A stretch of DNA of 64,000 bases from Auanema rhodensis. Its lineage: Eukaryota; Animalia; Nematoda. The stretch lies in the NCBI GenBank assembly GCA_964057225.1, contig OZ059894.1, forward strand, positions 12,214,001-12,278,000, given 5' to 3'. Of the stretch, positions 1,550 through 8,398 are shown piece by piece. Numbering within the stretch: the first letter of the stretch is position 1; each line of letters begins with the position of its first letter. A program made the position numbers and the translations under genes. The notes below the pieces were generated by a model that saw nothing but the letters and a program-made list of their open reading frames with translations, made no database searches and had not been told where the DNA came from.

Positions 1550-1604
1550 ACCACCCGAATAGGCCCCCACGCACTAAACGAGATATATACATTACCAGTA
1601 TAGT

Positions 1605-1644
1605 AATAGAACACATATTGAAGATTAATTCGATAAGAACAATT
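1605..1644 (-). pseudogene. Degenerate U2 fragment (about nt 39-78), repeated in the spacer of every unit (e.g. 7858-7897)
   Basis: aatagaacacatattgaagattaattcgataagaacaatt vs U2 aatggaacacatatcgaaggttaattcgataagaacgatt: 36/40 identical. Confidence 0.9.
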
Positions 1645-1914
1645 TATTGACGTAGAGAATGTTTGTTCCGAAAAACTACAATATTAAACTATAAAAGTAA
1701 CAAAAGCGTAGAGGCAGCAAAGACATGAATAAACATAAATGTAAATACAGAATTACCAGGTAGTACATAAGTATGACAAAAAATTATAAGAAAGCCATGA
1801 AAATAGAAGGTTTGTGAACAAATGAGAGGTACATCTTTGATCGTATAGTCATTTCTAAACCGTTCGTATGCTGCAGCATCGTCATAAGCGTCACTCAAGT
1901 TGAATTTCCATGTG
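1645..1914 (-). mobile_element. Putative 5'-truncated relic of an older U2-targeted retro-insertion (present in every unit)
   Basis: Bracketed on the minus strand by GTGTAGTA (1915-1922) and degenerate U2 from nt 39/40 onward; ends in TCAATAA(A) like the intact element. Confidence 0.45.
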
Positions 1915-1961: not shown

Positions 1962-2110
1962 TGGGCCGTTCCCGCCAGCAGTGCAAGAGCGGGTCGACCC
2001 GTGAGGTGGAGCTAGCAAGCCAGCATCTACCTCAAGTCTCAAAAATCGGTTAACCTTATTGTGAACCAATGGAACACATATCGAAGGTTAATTCGATAAG
2101 AACGATTACT
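1962..2110 (-). pseudogene. U2: 3' part (nt 36-184) of the interrupted U2 snRNA gene
   Basis: Identical to the intact copies; contains stems IIa and IIb, the Sm site and stems III and IV, but lacks the first 35 nt. Confidence 0.95.
2050..2110 (-). repeat. 61-bp direct repeat (U2 nt 36-96), copy at the element 3' side
   Basis: ttaaccttattgtg...gaacgattact is identical to 5832-5892. Confidence 0.95.
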
Positions 2111-2500
2111 GGTTTATTGAATAACTAATGTTATGATACAATAAATAACCAATAAAAAAGAGCCCAGAATCGGGGAGACGGTATTACCTGTACAACTTAA
2201 AACAGCAAGTGATTAAAAAGTACAAAATAAAACACATTACCAACAGAGGCTAAAACGACTCAAGAGTCGGGGGAGTGGGTTAAAAAAAGTAATGAATAAC
2301 AAAAAAATGAATAATAAAGCAGAACAGTGAAAAGTAAATATCAAGTGCCGCTATGATCAAACAATTTGAGTGCCTACGGCAATGGTGTTAAAAATAAACA
2401 ACAAAATACATGTACCAATGAAGGTCAGAAAGAGAGAAAGAAAAAAGACAAAAATAAGTAATACAAAAAGTAAATATATTACAATCAAATTACAAACAAG
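2111..2500 (-). other. Retrotransposon 3' UTR (390 nt, U-rich on the sense strand) ending AATAAACC, no poly(A) tail
   Basis: Lies between the stop codon and the U2 junction; tttatt at 2113-2118 is AATAAA on the minus strand. Confidence 0.85.
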
Positions 2501-5500
2501 TCAATGGATAATTTCTTCTTCATACTGCCTTACACCAGAAACATGTTCCACGTAGATATTCCTGGCCCACTTGATGGTATCGGCGACGACGAGCTTCTCC
2601 ATTAGCCGGTTGTAGTGGCTGCTGATCTTGAGTGATCGGAGGGCTTGTCCGTTGAGCGGGTCCATAGTTCCAAGCATTCCTACGACATACGCTTCTACAC
2701 TAGTCTTATAACCAAGACATTGGTATTGGCTGGCTATGTCAGCATATTTCCTCTCCTTTATCATACGCGCGGCTATCATGGCTTGTCGGCGGTTTTCATA
2801 GCTCACTGTAACATCAACGATACTACAGTGTTTTGCGTCATGATCGACCACTACTATGTCAGGTCGGAGTGTACTATTAATGCCAGGAAGAGGCTGGTTA
2901 GTGTAAACTTCTCCGTTTTTAGGCTCTGGCAGGGCTTTGATAAGACGGTCCACGATGTTGTTGTGGCGGAGTTGGATTGCTCTCGTGTGAAAGTGGCAGT
3001 GTCCAAGAACATGTGCAGCAGTTTCGTTGGGGTAACTACACCTGCGGCACTGTTTGTTTCCTTCTCCGTGTCTTCTACAGCCATTGAGCTGGAGAGTATT
3101 AAGTCGAGCCTTGTGGATGAATCGCCAATCAGCAAACCGTATGAAATCTCCCTTCGCCATAAAGTGATTGGACGCTTTGTTGAGCATTGTGACATCAAAG
3201 ACTTTCCCTTGATCCGGTTTTTGAAGAAGGATCCGAAGGTCTTTCAGCCATAATGCACGTCGCAGGCTTCTGTGGCATAGTGAAGGTGTTAACAGTTGGT
3301 TGTTTAGATTGAGTTCTAAACCACTTTCGAGGCATGTCCAGTTAGCGTTGATGAGTTTTTTGAGTTGACGCATCGCTACTCTTACTCTAGTCCAGATGGA
3401 GGAAACATCAGATGTTTCGGTGTCGAAAATGCCATCAACGGAACCGTTGTAATATGCAGCTGTCTCATCGTTACTGGCTTGACGTTTAATCCTTTTTGAT
3501 GCTACTTTTTTTGAGTCTTGATGCGCAATATCAGCTACCACAAGATCAGATGACTTCAAAAGTTGGTAGGCATGAGTGACTTCACAGACGTCTGACAGGT
3601 GTTGGAGTCGAGAGAGACCAAGTCCGCCGTAGTTAGTTGGCAGGTAGATTGGTTCAGCACTGGCGTTTGGAGGATAGTGCATCCATCTACGGGCACAGCG
3701 TTTGAGTTCTTTGTCAAAGGCGACTAGTTTACTCTTTGGGACGTGGCCATTCGTCATATGAAAATTAAGGCAGGGCATCAGGAAGGTGCGTACTGCGTCA
3801 GCTTTCTGCCATTCAGCCAGTAAGGATTTGTCAATTTTTTCCAAGTGTTGACTCATAATATTCATTGTTGGAACCGCAGACTTATGTAAATGCATTCCAG
3901 TAGGGATTCCCAGGTGGGAGTAGCTGTCAAATTTGCTGAGAGCGGGTAGAGAGCAGCTCTGAAGCATGTATGAGGCTGTTGATATTTTCCCTTTGTCGAT
4001 CGTCAAAGTGGCGCATTTCGCTGGTTTGAAGGTCAAGCCTGTGAAATTAGCCGCATTTGATGCTGCGTCCAACATTTTCTGTAGATCTTCTGATGATGAG
4101 GAGACCAGGGCAAGGTCATCGGCGTACGCTAGCACAGCGATGTTGTTATTGTGTAGCTTATAGCCTGTAGAGGTTTCCAAGATGGTTTTAATTAGAGGTT
4201 CAATGGCAAGGTTGAACAGGATCGGAGATAGTGGGGATCCTTGTAACACACCTGCGTGAACTGGAATGGTCGAAGTGAGTCCGGAGCCTGTCTGGATTAT
4301 TGTAGAGGCATCTGTGTATAGAGCTCGTACTCGGGATATTGAGGCTTCAGCCATTCCTGACCATCTTAGAACGTCTAGCAGAGTTTCGTGTGGCAGCGAT
4401 CCAAAAGCGTTTGCGAGATCAAGCCAAGCAATTGCAATTTTCTCACGTTTACGTTTAGCGTCTGCAATGGTACTTTGCAACAAAAAGTTGTGTTCCATGC
4501 ATCCAGCTTTGGCCACAAAGCCCTTTTGGGAGGGAGAAAGTCTTTTTTCTGCTCTTGCCCATGTTAGCAGTCGATGCGTAAGACAAGCTGAGTACGTCTT
4601 ACCAATTGTGCACGAAAGTGCTATTGGTCGCCAGTTGTTAATGTCAGCTTTATCACCTTTCTTATGGATGAGGACGGTGGTCGACTCTTTCCAGGAAAAA
4701 GGGATGTGTCCTAGCTTGTGTACGGTGTTAAATATCGCTGCTAATATGTGACCTCCTTGGTCAAATTTCTTCCAGTGCGAGTATCGAAGTCCATCAGCTC
4801 CTGGAGCCGTATCGCTGCAACGTCGTATGCGTTCCCAGACTTCCAAAGGGGTGAAAACACCTTCTAATGGGTCGGTACTAGCTGGCAAATCCGGTCTGGT
4901 GACTGTGATGGGGAGGGCTGGGCCTTGACTGCTGTGAACAGAAAGGAAGTGTTTTTCAACCTCTGCAGATGGTATGGTGCAGGTTTCACTTTGTTCTCCG
5001 AGCAGTTGTCGAAAGGCTTTCTTCTTGTTGGCCCTCCAAAGCTTCTGGATCTTCATCGCCTGGGTTTTTTGGTCTTTCTCAGGTTGTGTGTGTGGTCGGC
5101 GCCTTTGTCGGAAGTTGGGAACTTTGATCATAATGTCAAGAGACTTTCTGATTGTGTCTACCAACTCTTCCAGGACCTGCTCGAGCTCACTTTTGCACAC
5201 TACCTTTTTAATTCTATCCACCCAAATATTTTCAGAGTTTCTATTTGGATCAGGGTCGGCAAAAGATGGTTCTGTACTCGGAACCCTGATCTCGTTGAAT
5301 ATTTCACTCTCTCGCGGAAGGGGGGAAACTTCGGCCTCTGGGGACAAGTCCAGAATTGGGGCCTCAAACAAGCGTACCGTTGATGGAGATCCTTGTTCCT
5401 GTCCACTGGATGATGTTTCCTCCATTGTACGCTCCTCCACGGGCGGGGTGGTCGTCCTTGTGCCTGGTGGGCGGGTGTTCCTGATCCTCCGCAATATAGG

Positions 5501-5779
5501 GCGGGAACTGGGCTCTCTCGGAGATAGAGGTGAGATCACCACAGTTTCCTCTATGATGCGGAGGCATCCTTCAGCTTTTTTCTGATGGCTTTTAACGGCC
5601 TTCAGATTGCTGGTGAGGCCACAGGCACGGCACTCAAATTCTACTCCGACCTCATGTTCTCTCCGAAGATGGCGGACGAGACCATTGTGGTCTGAGTAGG
5701 ATCGCGGAATAGGAGCGCAGATTGAACAAGAAAAAGGGCTCTGAAGAGGCACCTTCAGCTTGTAAAGCCCTTGCTCCAT
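2501..5779 (-). CDS. 1092-aa retrotransposon protein: C2H2 and CCHC zinc fingers, P/S/E-rich linker, reverse transcriptase, CCHC zinc knuckle, PD-(D/E)xK restriction-like endonuclease
   Basis: Zinc fingers CSIC..HLRREH and CRAC..H..C. RT motifs APGADG, LIHKKGD..NWRPIAL, QKGF, WLDLANAFGSLPH, GVLQGSPLSPILFN, YADD, GLTFKPAKC, YSHLG. Knuckle CRRCSYPNETAAHVLGHC. RLE motifs RHN, RPDIVV, DVTVSYE, KERKY. The C-terminus DTIKWARNIYVEHVSG resembles Utopia proteins as I recall them. No internal stops. Confidence 0.97.
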   Translation of the reverse strand: MEQGLYKLKVPLQSPFSCSICAPIPRSYSDHNGLVRHLRREHEVGVEFECRACGLTSNLKAVKSHQKKAEGCLRIIEETVVISPLSPREPSSRPILRRIRNTRPPGTRTTTPPVEERTMEETSSSGQEQGSPSTVRLFEAPILDLSPEAEVSPLPRESEIFNEIRVPSTEPSFADPDPNRNSENIWVDRIKKVVCKSELEQVLEELVDTIRKSLDIMIKVPNFRQRRRPHTQPEKDQKTQAMKIQKLWRANKKKAFRQLLGEQSETCTIPSAEVEKHFLSVHSSQGPALPITVTRPDLPASTDPLEGVFTPLEVWERIRRCSDTAPGADGLRYSHWKKFDQGGHILAAIFNTVHKLGHIPFSWKESTTVLIHKKGDKADINNWRPIALSCTIGKTYSACLTHRLLTWARAEKRLSPSQKGFVAKAGCMEHNFLLQSTIADAKRKREKIAIAWLDLANAFGSLPHETLLDVLRWSGMAEASISRVRALYTDASTIIQTGSGLTSTIPVHAGVLQGSPLSPILFNLAIEPLIKTILETSTGYKLHNNNIAVLAYADDLALVSSSSEDLQKMLDAASNAANFTGLTFKPAKCATLTIDKGKISTASYMLQSCSLPALSKFDSYSHLGIPTGMHLHKSAVPTMNIMSQHLEKIDKSLLAEWQKADAVRTFLMPCLNFHMTNGHVPKSKLVAFDKELKRCARRWMHYPPNASAEPIYLPTNYGGLGLSRLQHLSDVCEVTHAYQLLKSSDLVVADIAHQDSKKVASKRIKRQASNDETAAYYNGSVDGIFDTETSDVSSIWTRVRVAMRQLKKLINANWTCLESGLELNLNNQLLTPSLCHRSLRRALWLKDLRILLQKPDQGKVFDVTMLNKASNHFMAKGDFIRFADWRFIHKARLNTLQLNGCRRHGEGNKQCRRCSYPNETAAHVLGHCHFHTRAIQLRHNNIVDRLIKALPEPKNGEVYTNQPLPGINSTLRPDIVVVDHDAKHCSIVDVTVSYENRRQAMIAARMIKERKYADIASQYQCLGYKTSVEAYVVGMLGTMDPLNGQALRSLKISSHYNRLMEKLVVADTIKWARNIYVEHVSGVRQYEEEIIH

Positions 5780-5831
5780 CTCTAGCAGATCTAAAGACTT
5801 ACGTAGTACAGTTGCAATATCGATTTAGCCA
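5780..5831 (-). other. Retrotransposon-specific 5' UTR (52 nt)
   Basis: Non-U2 sequence between U2 nt 96 (5832) and the ATG (5779). Confidence 0.8.
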
Positions 5832-5892
5832 TTAACCTTATTGTGAACCAATGGAACACATATCGAAGGTTAATTCGATAAGAACGATTACT
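5832..5892 (-). repeat. 61-bp direct repeat (U2 nt 36-96), copy at the element 5' side
   Basis: Identical to 2050-2110. Confidence 0.95.
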
Positions 5893-5927
5893 ACACTTTG
5901 ATCTTAGCCAAAAGGCCGAGAAGCGAT
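5832..5927 (-). pseudogene. U2: 5' part (nt 1-96) of the interrupted U2 snRNA gene
   Basis: ATCGCTTCTCGGCCTTTTGGCTAAGATCAAAGTGTAGTA...AAGGTTAA, then element sequence; no Sm site. Confidence 0.95.
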
Positions 5928-7032: not shown

Positions 7033-8214
7033 ACAGTAAAAAGTCCAATCAAGAGAGAAATTTTTTCAACACATAGTTGTTTTTTTTTAAAATATCATTG
7101 TTTTTCCTCATAACTTGGTTTAAACTCGTTCTAACCCGTTGAAATACGTCTAGAAAGTCTTTATAACATGCATATGTATGATAGAACTTCATATTTATTG
7201 TAATAGAAAATTTTATTTTCAGACGTCTTGGTTAACAATGATATGTTTTACCCCCTTATAATTTTTATCATAATGTTCCTTATACGGAACGCTCAATGAA
7301 ACTTGCTTCCAGAAAAATTTCTTTCTATTTTTTCTTCATATGTACGTAGATACTATAGAGAACTATGATAGAAAACTTTAACATTCACGAAATCATCATT
7401 TCTCATTACGCTACGGAGGTTTAAAAAGCTGTGTTTTACCTTATAATAGACCGGAAAACCCTTGTGTTAAAACTGGACCGTTTTTACACATATAAAAATG
7501 TCCCGTATTCGGGACCCTAATGTAACTTTTGATTCCCTATATTTTTTTTCATGAAATTTACAATCTACTGTAGAAAGAAGAATTATTTTTATAAAAACTG
7601 TAAATTTTTGAAAAATGAAAACAAAACGAAAACAAAAACAACTTTTTTTTGAACATTTTCTCACACAAGGGTCCCCCCTTACCTACTTTTTTTCTCATTA
7701 CTCGTTTCAACCTCATCCGATCACTCTGCAAACATGTTTAATCGTTCTAACTTGTTGAAATACGTCTTAAAAGTCTAAACAACATGCATATGCATAATAG
7801 AAACCACCCGAATAGGCCCCCACGCACTAAACGAGATATATACATTACCAGTATAGTAATAGAACACATATTGAAGATTAATTCGATAAGAACAATTTAT
7901 TGACGTAGAGAATGTTTGTTCCGAAAAACTACAATATTAAACTATAAAAGTAACAAAAGCGTAGAGGCAGCAAAGACATGAATAAACATAAATGTAAATA
8001 CAGAATTACCAGGTAGTACATAAGTATGACAAAAAATTATAAGAAAGCCATGAAAATAGAAGGTTTGTGAACAAATGAGAGGTACATCTTTGATCGTATA
8101 GTCATTTCTAAACCGTTCGTATGCTGCAGCATCGTCATAAGCGTCACTCAAGTTGAATTTCCATGTGTACTACACGATTTTCATTCTTATTGTTACATTC
8201 TTTCCCTGAGGGAA

Positions 8215-8398
8215 TGGGCCGTTCCCGCCAGCAGTGCAAGAGCGGGTCGACCCGTGAGGTGGAGCTAGCAAGCCAGCATCTACCTCAAGTCTCAAAAATC
8301 GGTTAACCTTATTGTGAACCAATGGAACACATATCGAAGGTTAATTCGATAAGAACGATTACTACACTTTGATCTTAGCCAAAAGGCCGAGAAGCGAT
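8215..8398 (-). ncRNA. U2: U2 snRNA (intact, ~184 nt)
   Basis: 5' ATCGCTTCTCGGCCTTTTGGCTAAGATCAAAGTGTAGTA; stem IIa TATCGAA/TTCGATA; IIc TTAACCTT/AAGGTTAA; Sm site GATTTTTG; stem IV loop TTGCAC; ends GGCCCA. Confidence 0.97.

Follow-up and report, generated by a model that had tools for sequence, protein, structure and literature searches.

Utopia is, to our knowledge, the most widely distributed site-specific lineage among the non-LTR retrotransposons with a restriction-like endonuclease (RLE). Its members are specific for U2 snRNA genes and belong to the NeSL clade (Kojima and Jurka, 2015; PMC4640811), and nematode members are already known from Trichinella and Pristionchus (PMC4640811). 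The published 3′ end of Utopia adjoins U2 directly after GUAGUA, with U2 starting at nt 39 in the Phytophthora numbering; no target-site duplication (TSD) was reported in arthropods and one of 20 bp was reported in reptiles. The expression strategy of Utopia was not discussed there (PMC4640811), and no account of expression or of 5′ end joining is given in the Utopia literature cited here. One to three N-terminal zinc fingers without a Myb domain separate Utopia from R2 (Hassan et al., 2026; PMC13188248). In R2, HDV-like ribozymes often cleave within the upstream target sequence, and co-transcripts propagate aberrant 5′ junctions, all earwig R2 copies carrying 22 bp of downstream 28S (PMC3774820).

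The window analyzed here, a stretch of 64,000 nucleotides of Auanema rhodensis DNA (contig OZ059894.1, positions 12,214,001 to 12,278,000), contains 50 5S genes and 23 complete plus two partial U2 genes (5819-5927 and 1956-2134), all detected by Rfam on the minus strand. As a previous sequence-only reading had proposed, one of its 24 U2 genes, a ratio that is local to the window, is interrupted by an insert of about 3.7 kb; this was borne out by Rfam and by comparison with the intact U2 gene at 8209-8398, and the flanks indeed resemble uninserted units, with 99.2-100% identity to 22-23 of them. In the same comparison, the upstream piece of U2 reaches nt 96 and the downstream piece resumes at nt 40, which leaves a U2 stretch of 57 nt (5832-5888) present in both. 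Read on the minus strand, the locus consists of U2 nt 1-39 (5889-5927, within the partial Rfam match at 5819-5927), ending in the GUAGUA branch-recognition motif; U2 nt 40-96 (5832-5888), taken below as a heritable leader segment or pseudo target-site duplication; a 5′ UTR of 52 nt (5780-5831); an ORF of 1092 aa plus stop (2501-5779); a 3′ UTR of 394 nt (2107-2500), with AAUAAA at 2113-2118 and AGTA at 2107-2110; and, as the downstream half of the gene that is interrupted, U2 nt 40-190 (1956-2106). The segment of U2 nt 1-39 plays two parts: it forms the upstream half of the target, and with it begins the U2 leader that belongs to the inserted unit.

The 3′ junction had been placed at either U2 35/36 or U2 39/40, with the edge of the insert at 2111. 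Only the second position stood. The other 19 fetched loci read ...AAACCATTA/ATCGTT (the slash marks the junction); in the window copy, a single T>G change turns ATTA into AGTA. Since ATTA is present in the 19 other loci and AGTA in the window copy only, the four ambiguous bases belong to the element, a junction at 35/36 was rejected, and the element ends at 2107 rather than at 2111, AGTA being a one-base variant of its ATTA. The junction ...ATTA/ATCGTTCTT was uniform in the 20 loci (AGTA in the window copy) and corresponds by homology to the junction published for Utopia, .../TCTGTTCTT; the sequence that follows, ATCGTTCTTATCG, is U2 from nt 40 onward, and its published counterpart reads .../TCTGTTCTTATCAG. 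The number is 40 here and 39 in Phytophthora because of one extra A upstream. These junctions show that the insertion site corresponds to the canonical Utopia/Keno site, directly after GUAGUA (U2 39/40, ±1 nt). Canonical GUAGUA-UCUG U2 genes were not found elsewhere in the genome when up to one mismatch was allowed.

The uninterrupted 1092-aa ORF with the order ZF-ZF-RT-CCHC-RLE and its catalytic motifs, also described in the first reading, was confirmed by Pfam and by motif positions. On the minus strand, it encodes two zinc fingers at the N terminus (aa 18-42 and 50-72; 5564-5728), with weak Pfam C2H2 matches; a reverse transcriptase domain (aa 371-593; 4001-4669; Pfam RVT_1, E 6e-28) with YADD at aa 552-555 (4115-4126); and a CCHC zinc knuckle (aa 911-928) followed by the RLE (2744-3049), identified by motifs and by alignment to the ZF/RLE region of R2. 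The RPD..D..K motif of the RLE spans aa 972-1012 (RPD 972-974, D 989, K 1008-1011). The closest solved homologues were the R2 proteins 9nl3, 9dou and 8gh6 (alignment E 1e-68 to 1e-50); aa 903-1044 align with the R2 ZF/RLE region, and the alignment begins only past the R2 Myb region. No Pfam match to Myb was obtained in aa 1-300 even at E≤10, and no protease (Ulp1-like), RNase H or APE domain was found by Pfam in the element protein.

The element combines a C-terminal CCHC and a PD-(D/E)xK endonuclease, with no APE family found by Pfam, as in RLE non-LTR retrotransposons, and two fingers at aa 18-72 with Myb absent, as in Utopia; all of the matched copies lie in the U2 array or at U2-derived sites. 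The target is U2 rather than the 28S of R2, with no Myb found, and the flanks are U2, not the SL1 of NeSL-1, whose nematode members have a Ulp1-like protease; no protease family was matched in Pfam. Two metagenomic relatives from other organisms (L027 and L026, 40-41% identity) have U2 downstream of them, beginning at the same nucleotide, a context taken from one metagenome scan. In a tree (LG+G4, quick mode) whose rows are unlabelled database proteins and not curated Utopia, NeSL, R4 or HERO references, the window protein was placed beside Diploscapter-like proteins, within a 28-row clade (SH-aLRT 100) that also holds both U2-flanked relatives and proteins of Daphnia, Dendroctonus and turtle; the R2-named clade falls outside it. 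Taxa given as published Utopia hosts are represented in the 28-row clade. The architecture without Myb, the 3′ junction after GUAGUA, the restriction to the U2 array and the clade shared with U2-flanked relatives support, at the level of sequence, the Utopia identity suggested earlier, with the window insert as a full-length Utopia-type (NeSL-clade, RLE-bearing, Myb-less) element.

Exact-pattern counts over the whole genome gave 454 U2 bodies, 326 of them unbroken between nt 32 and nt 102, and about 28% of the array U2 bodies are disrupted. Full element 5′ ends numbered 47, all in one 1.35-Mb 5S-5S-U2 array of contig C1. The collection of genomic copies, proposed with the first reading to tabulate flanks, placed the 43 DNA matches, the 47 5′ starts and the 42 scored protein matches in this U2 array, at 10.93-12.22 Mb, the protein and DNA scoring covering the best candidates, so that diverged copies elsewhere could escape it. 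The exceptions to a location in U2 genes are U2-derived sites (fossil or rider heads). Twenty-five loci, about half of all, were read at sequence level, and the rest by coordinate-only pattern counts.

Our explanation of the locus as a whole, a Utopia-type member of a young family that would be transcribed from the U2 promoter, carry a heritable leader and insert by TPRT at 39/40, is given a probability of about 75%. A full-length copy would be transcribed from the U2 snRNA promoter, with its start at U2 +1 as judged from the DNA junctions, to produce a chimeric U2(1-96)-element RNA. The element protein would bind the 3′ UTR, whose last ~177 nt are common to a non-coding rider; this tail folds with z = -2.8. 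The RLE would nick the bottom strand at 39/40 and reverse transcription would be primed there (TPRT, established for R2). The cDNA would end in the complement of U2 1-96, of which the U2 1-39 part could anneal to the upstream target and prime the second strand. This annealing step would give a uniform 5′ junction, restore an intact 39/40 site and leave the new copy behind a U2 promoter; tandem re-insertions would follow from the restored site. Truncated cDNAs would join at nt 39 without leader, and since truncated copies of this kind are present, both strands are probably cut at or near 39/40. Where the transcript starts, where its 3′ end lies and that it uses the U2 promoter we infer from the DNA junctions; snRNA-type promoters are not known for an efficient output of 3.8-kb RNA.

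A broader proposal, to which we give slightly less than even chances, is that the captured U2 1-96 works as a permanent leader in all respects: Pol II transcription from +1 of the U2 promoter, homology-directed 5′ joining, rebuilding of the target, a promoter for each new copy, escape from snRNPs and possibly SL trans-splicing. Because the leader segment ends 3 nt short of the Sm-site motif, the chimeric RNA would avoid being assembled into snRNPs. The 5′ UTR carries UACUAC (5803-5808, complementary to U2 GUAGUA), GUAAGU (5797-5802) and CUUUAG (5791-5796), and had no substitutions among 19 distinct copies. With UACUAC as a branch-site mimic and UUUAG as an acceptor-like motif 11 nt before the AUG, the translated mRNA might arise by SL trans-splicing, the unspliced RNA being the template.

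The start of the template was approached through three aberrant junctions. In L010 and L020, the leader starts precisely with U2 nt 1, shows AT microhomology and lies beside non-promoter or deleted upstream DNA, and in the identical L017 and L018 it starts at nt 3 after a T run; no further junctions of the L010 type were found besides L010. Because they begin at U2 nt 1-3, these junctions, three independent events only, suggest that the RNA template begins where transcription of U2 starts. The leader could also be heritable if a self-cleaving ribozyme or host processing cut the template out of a longer read-through transcript, in the way that R2 is released from its 28S co-transcript. R2 provides the precedent of HDV-like ribozymes (PMC3774820), and the downstream members of tandem pairs, which have no promoter of their own, would be accommodated. 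However, a search of the element and its flanks at E≤1 matched no ribozyme or other known RNA family, the 5′ UTR has a length of only 52 nt, and the aberrant junctions coincide with the snRNA start site, none of them including promoter-proximal sequence. Cleavage from a longer transcript was considered unlikely on these grounds, and a template starting at U2 +1 is preferred.

The recent history of the family was analyzed from the divergence and the contexts of its copies. At least 38 intact ORFs are present in the genome: 38 of the 39 full-length six-frame matches were stop-free, as were 18 of the 19 distinct sequenced copies. The copies diverge by 0.03-1.4%, and dN/dS between subfamilies was 0.2-0.3, with the synonymous and non-synonymous variants polarised by per-column majority. 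No indels were observed in the ORF, the 20 indel columns all lying in the ~390-nt 3′ UTR; 32 of 60 substitutions fall in third codon positions, and the density of substitutions is three times higher in the 3′ UTR than in the ORF. L002 and L003 are identical in sequence, yet lie in different junction contexts, and identical or nearly identical copies were found alone, in tandem pairs with partners of different subfamilies, upstream or downstream of riders, and at a spacer fossil site. Since identical copies occupy different junction contexts, the family has probably moved recently. These data point to a young, recently retrotransposed family under purifying selection, and at the family level the low divergence, the open ORFs and the varied contexts support the earlier description of the element as young and possibly active.

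The element could instead be immobile, its copies being multiplied and kept uniform by unequal crossing-over or gene conversion, as in the "dead element replicating" behavior described for a degenerate R2 of a stick insect (PMC4370867). The array is strongly homogenised, with units 99-100% identical, and some copies are clear segmental duplicates, such as L017 and its inverted equal L018; part of the copy number may for this reason stem from unequal crossing-over. By contrast, near-identical copies in varied junction contexts and independent 5′-truncated copies are not expected from an immobile element, and passive amplification would not maintain open ORFs in 38 of 39 full-length matches with dN/dS of 0.2-0.3. 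We find immobility improbable, and recent retrotransposition remains the preferred origin of the copies.

U2 up to nt 96 precedes all of the 47 full 5′ ends in the genome, and the initial view of an insert simply flanked by U2 failed at the 5′ side, where the U2 repeat is the putative leader. The 57-61 bp repeat might be a true long TSD produced by staggered cuts, at 39/40 in the bottom strand and at 96/97 in the top strand. Exceptionally long duplications are reported for some rDNA-specific RLE elements (R9), full-length copies in normal U2 genes are flanked on both sides by identical U2 40-96, and truncated copies joining at nt 39 could reflect a 3′ overhang trimmed to the duplex boundary. 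Three lines of evidence oppose this explanation. L003, L010 and L020 are arranged as U2[1-96]-element-U2[40-79]-rider; with the downstream U2 stopping at nt 79, nothing on that side corresponds to upstream nt 80-96, and the "duplication" differs from its supposed source. Moreover, the riders, which presumably use the enzyme of the element because its 177-nt tail is shared, carry another, constant head (U2 1-79), that is, a 40-nt repeat (40-79) and not one of 57 nt. Finally, the three 5′-truncated copies all lack the repeat and join at nt 39, at nt 39 with 5 extra nt, and at nt 20. A long TSD was thus judged very improbable, and in its simple form it was rejected. The comparison of junctions shows that the 57 nt of U2 (40-96) before each full-length copy are inherited with the element rather than duplicated from the target.

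That the window insertion is an assembly artefact of a collapsed or mis-joined repetitive array is scarcely credible, for although megabase tandem arrays are error-prone, 47 copies with precise and consistent junctions, private substitutions and several contexts lie in one 24.7-Mb contig.

The DNA evidence speaks for reading the flanking U2 repeat as a heritable leader that begins at U2 +1. The element is Utopia-type, a known kind; the heritable U2 leader is apparently undescribed for Utopia in the cited literature. The array offers an unusually clean natural experiment, in which about 47 young copies, the majority of them with open ORFs, stand among hundreds of empty sites that are identical; taken together with its truncated copies, tandem re-insertions and non-coding riders, these allow one to read from DNA alone where cleavage occurs, where the template begins and ends, and which 3′ region is recognized. 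If true, this would be a second RNA-gene parasite, besides R2, riding host-gene transcription, here by way of a Pol II snRNA promoter and with no ribozyme in evidence, and its apparently active enzyme would be a comparison point for R2-type targeted insertion. The enzyme also appears to re-cut junctions whose upstream half is not U2, a half-site behavior.

Like Utopia, the element has one ORF, in which N-terminal zinc fingers are combined with RT, CCHC and RLE but not with Myb, and a precise 3′ junction directly after GUAGUA, with downstream U2 resuming from the homologous nucleotide. Its strict specificity resembles that of the Utopia elements of Phytophthora and Nasonia, and tandem insertions are also found in Nasonia (PMC4640811). 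Its protein is only 40-44% identical to named relatives and 55-56% identical to the Diploscapter-like proteins. It differs from published Utopia in the 57 nt of downstream U2 that each full-length copy appears to carry as an inherited 5′ leader, in a host target that is a megabase 5S-5S-U2 array of hundreds of units rather than a few U2 genes, and in the lack of Ulp1 protease and RNase H domains. The overall protein architecture, the precise 3′ junctions of TPRT type, the use of a multicopy RNA gene array, the non-autonomous riders with a common 3′ end and the spread of 5′ junction variants via a host-gene co-transcript are as in R2 (PMC3774820). Unlike R2, the target is U2 and not 28S, Myb and a detectable 5′ ribozyme are absent, and a putative Pol II snRNA promoter, used at its own +1, would replace Pol I read-through followed by self-cleavage. 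With NeSL-1 the element shares the clade (PMC4640811), a nematode host and a target that is a small-RNA gene arrayed with 5S; the target, however, is U2 instead of SL1, and Pfam gave no match to a Ulp1-like protease at the N terminus. The 3′ flanking U2 position is identical to that of Keno, a non-LTR retrotransposon of the APE type (PMC4640811).

The insert in the window (2107-5831, minus strand) is genuine: an intact copy of a Utopia family that has been active recently. Its ORF (2501-5779, minus strand) encodes 1092 aa without stops, RVT_1 was detected with Pfam at aa 371-593 (E 6e-28), and the YADD motif, a CCHC knuckle, the RPD..D..K endonuclease motif and two N-terminal zinc fingers were present. 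The flanks were 99.2-100% identical to the empty units. The earlier description of an insert with an uninterrupted 1092-aa ORF splitting a U2 gene was confirmed. The window belongs to C1, a 24.7-Mb contig of the 181-Mb genome (112 contigs), and Rfam resolved it as a regular minus-strand 5S-5S-U2 array with 23 complete U2 genes, 50 5S genes and two partial U2 segments flanking the insert. The array units measured 2461-2487 bp and the occupied unit 6253 bp.

On the U2 strand, the upstream U2 sequence continued to nt 96 and was followed by the element's first bases. The 3' junction of this copy read ...AAUAAACC-AGUA and then AUCGUUCUU, with U2 restarting at nt 40, directly 3' of the GUAGUA branch-recognition motif. 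The sequence-only reading had left the junction at 35/36 or 39/40; the four ambiguous bases were ATTA in 19/19 other fetched loci and therefore belong to the element, so that 39/40 was borne out and 35/36 was not. Judged from these loci, the AGTA of the window copy is a T>G variant of ATTA that mimics U2 by chance. The junction position is sure to within 1 nt only, one A being common to both sides. Since U2 here carries one extra A upstream (CAAAGUG), the restart at nt 40 corresponds by homology to nt 39, UCUGUUCUU, with which downstream U2 begins at the published Utopia/Keno junction (PMC4640811). The net insertion in the window, including the leader (U2 nt 40-96, window 5832-5888), was 57 + 3725 nt.

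The closest solved proteins were those of R2 retrotransposons (9nl3, 9dou and 8gh6; E 1e-68 to 1e-50), aligned across the RT, thumb/linker, CCHC and RLE regions with the R2 N-terminus not covered. No Myb domain was detectable in the element protein even at E<=10, an absence used to tell Utopia from R2 in a recent survey (PMC13188248). In a word-based search, the best protein matches (55-56% identity) came from metagenomes and the named ones (37-52%) from Diploscapter, Globodera, Panagrolaimus, Centruroides, Dendroctonus ponderosae, Daphnia and turtles, several of which appear as Utopia hosts in PMC4640811. Both metagenomic relatives with a 3' end on their contig (2/2) were followed by U2 starting at the same nucleotide: L027 by a U2 body (104 bits) from UCUGUUCUU, and L026 by an 18-nt U2 fragment. 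In an LG+G4 tree of 59 database proteins, which were not curated TE references, the window protein grouped with Diploscapter-like sequences (SH-aLRT 100), and a 28-row clade (SH-aLRT 100) held it together with both U2-flanked relatives, leaving an R2-named clade and APE-type LINEs outside. The tree supports membership in Utopia, and the Utopia-like identity first proposed is supported by the missing Myb domain, the junction after GUAGUA and the clade shared with the two U2-flanked relatives. The contig of another metagenomic relative carried a palindromic (AGT)n/(ACT)n microsatellite (L029:1015-1115), which produced spurious, sub-threshold Rfam miRNA matches of no meaning.

A DNA search of the whole genome returned 43 element matches, all lying on C1 at 10.93-12.22 Mb, and 37 of these were full length (98-99% identity). 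Pattern counts gave 47 element 5' starts, even at 2 mismatches, and U2 ending at nt 96 preceded 47/47; all scored copies lay in the U2 array. Six-frame protein search scored 39 full-length ORF matches, 38 without a stop. Sequence-level reading covered 25 loci, the rest of the census being coordinate-only pattern counts; these loci yielded 24 full-length copies representing 19 distinct sequences, 18 with an open ORF. Pairwise divergence was 0.03-1.4% with at least three subfamilies. The ORF varied at 60 sites (32 at third codon positions) without indels, the 390-nt 3' UTR held 21 variable sites and 20 indel columns, and dN/dS between subfamilies was 0.2-0.3. The window copy had 8 private substitutions (4 synonymous, 4 nonsynonymous) and lay 0.46-0.56% from the main subfamily.

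Array homogenisation surely contributes to this pattern (L017/L018 is a segmental duplicate in inverted orientation), but homogenisation alone cannot explain it. Identical sequences occupied different contexts (L002 downstream in a tandem pair, L003 alone and upstream of a rider, a non-coding insertion with a U2 head), the 5'-truncated copies were independent of one another, and tandem pairs joined different subfamilies. The low divergence, the dN/dS values and the identical copies in different contexts agree, at the level of the family, with the suggestion of a young, possibly active element.

Exact patterns for array-type U2, counted genome-wide, matched 454 bodies unbroken across nt 96/97 and 399 heads unbroken across 39/40, and 326 of the bodies were continuous from nt 32 to nt 102; hence ~128/454 bodies (28%) are disrupted, by the element or its riders, and the '1 in 24' rate of the window is that of a clean stretch. 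The proximal array (10.9-11.35 Mb) was far more disrupted than the distal array, where the window lies. At C1 ~11.22-11.30 Mb an array block was inverted, with U2 genes and element copies on the plus strand, and held mirror-image duplicates (L017/L018; 11262180+ and 11270485-). Intact U2 genes were also present on contigs C3, C4 and C8; the dispersed single genes (C3:15502361, C4:15441012 and eight C8 sites) scored as complete, and no element copies were found at them.

The flanking U2 repeat is a leader inherited with the element rather than a target-site duplication. The leader was absent from 3/3 5'-truncated copies, which joined U2 exactly at nt 39 (L025), at nt 39 plus five extra bases (L021) or at nt 20 (L022). 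Riders ending in the element's last 177 nt began with another head, U2 1-79, which stayed constant over at least five contexts; they presumably use the element's enzyme. The order in L003, L010 and L020 was U2[1-96]-element-U2[40-79]-rider; because downstream U2 stops at nt 79, upstream nt 80-96 lack a source on that side, and staggered cleavage over 57 bp would have duplicated rider sequence instead. L003 and L020 are separate events, as they belong to different subfamilies. Moreover, the 5' boundary was identical in 47/47 full 5' ends. Therefore, U2 40-96 is part of the copied unit, and the cuts in the two strands both seem to lie at or close to 39/40. Each full-length insertion regenerates an intact 39/40 site at its own head, so tandem copies are spaced by exactly the U2 leader segment.

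Riders measured ~0.74-0.92 kb (L024:4823-5738; L025:7634-8375; and downstream of the element in L003, L010 and L020). Those of a second type had another tail of ~40 nt (...CATTCTCTACGTCAATAA), pointing to a further autonomous partner that is extinct or was not seen. Every array unit bore a fossil insert ~311 bp downstream of U2 (window 1600-1700, minus strand), consisting of the alternative rider tail (...CTACGTCAATAA), a 90%-identical U2 40-78 piece and the first part of a rider body; an ancient insertion was thus already present in the unit that was amplified. This site can still be hit, as in L010.

Three independent junctions lacked the normal U2 promoter ahead of the leader. The L010 element lay at the spacer site, where the upstream half is an older insert's tail, and its leader started from U2 nt 1, overlapping by 2 nt (AT). 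L020 lacked 39 bp of promoter-proximal DNA, and there too the leader started from nt 1, with AT as the overlap; in L017=L018 it began at nt 3, preceded by an extended T run. None of the three carried promoter-proximal sequence. On the simplest reading, the template RNA starts where U2 transcription starts and includes U2 1-96, and we infer transcription from the U2 promoter. The cDNA complement of U2 1-39 would then anneal to the upstream target, giving a seamless 5' junction, and the whole leader would be kept where the upstream side offered no homology. The L010 site, whose upstream half is not U2, shows that such a site can be used by the enzyme, and recognition may thus depend chiefly on the half downstream. 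U2 genes genome-wide read GUAGUA-AUC-GUUCUU (for example, window 8353-8367), and the canonical GUAGUA-UCU-GUUCUU was not found in the genome with <=1 mismatch allowed; the U2 5' end (AUCGCUUCU) is consequently similar to the target's downstream half (AUCGUUCUU).

The leader stops 3 nt short of the Sm-site motif, so a chimeric RNA would not be expected to assemble an Sm core. The leader contains one 7-codon uORF, and positions -3 and +4 of the main AUG are A and G. The 52-nt 5' UTR carries UACUAC, a perfect complement of the leader's GUAGUA (chance ~0.01 in 52 nt) and predicted to pair with it, directly followed by GUAAGU and CUUUAG, 11 nt before the AUG (window 5791-5808, minus strand); these motifs may act as an intramolecular mask, a branch-site mimic or an SL trans-splice acceptor. 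At the other end, AAUAAA lies 12 nt before the element's 3' end, and the predicted fold of the common 177-nt tail is moderately more stable than those of shuffled sequences (z = -2.8).

In arthropod Utopia, which makes no TSD (PMC4640811), the two strands are likewise cut at or near one position. No promoter, co-transcription or ribozyme is mentioned for Utopia in that study. In the R2 model, 28S sequence on the co-transcript yields uniform 5' junctions and propagates aberrant ones, and earwig R2 carries 22 bp of downstream 28S sequence in all copies (PMC3774820). Co-transcribed target sequence would likewise shape the 5' junctions of the present element, which differs from R2 in that no ribozyme family matched it at E<=1; its 5' UTR is only 52 nt. 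The element is of a known kind; what is new is its well-documented heritable U2 leader, together with an expression model open to test.
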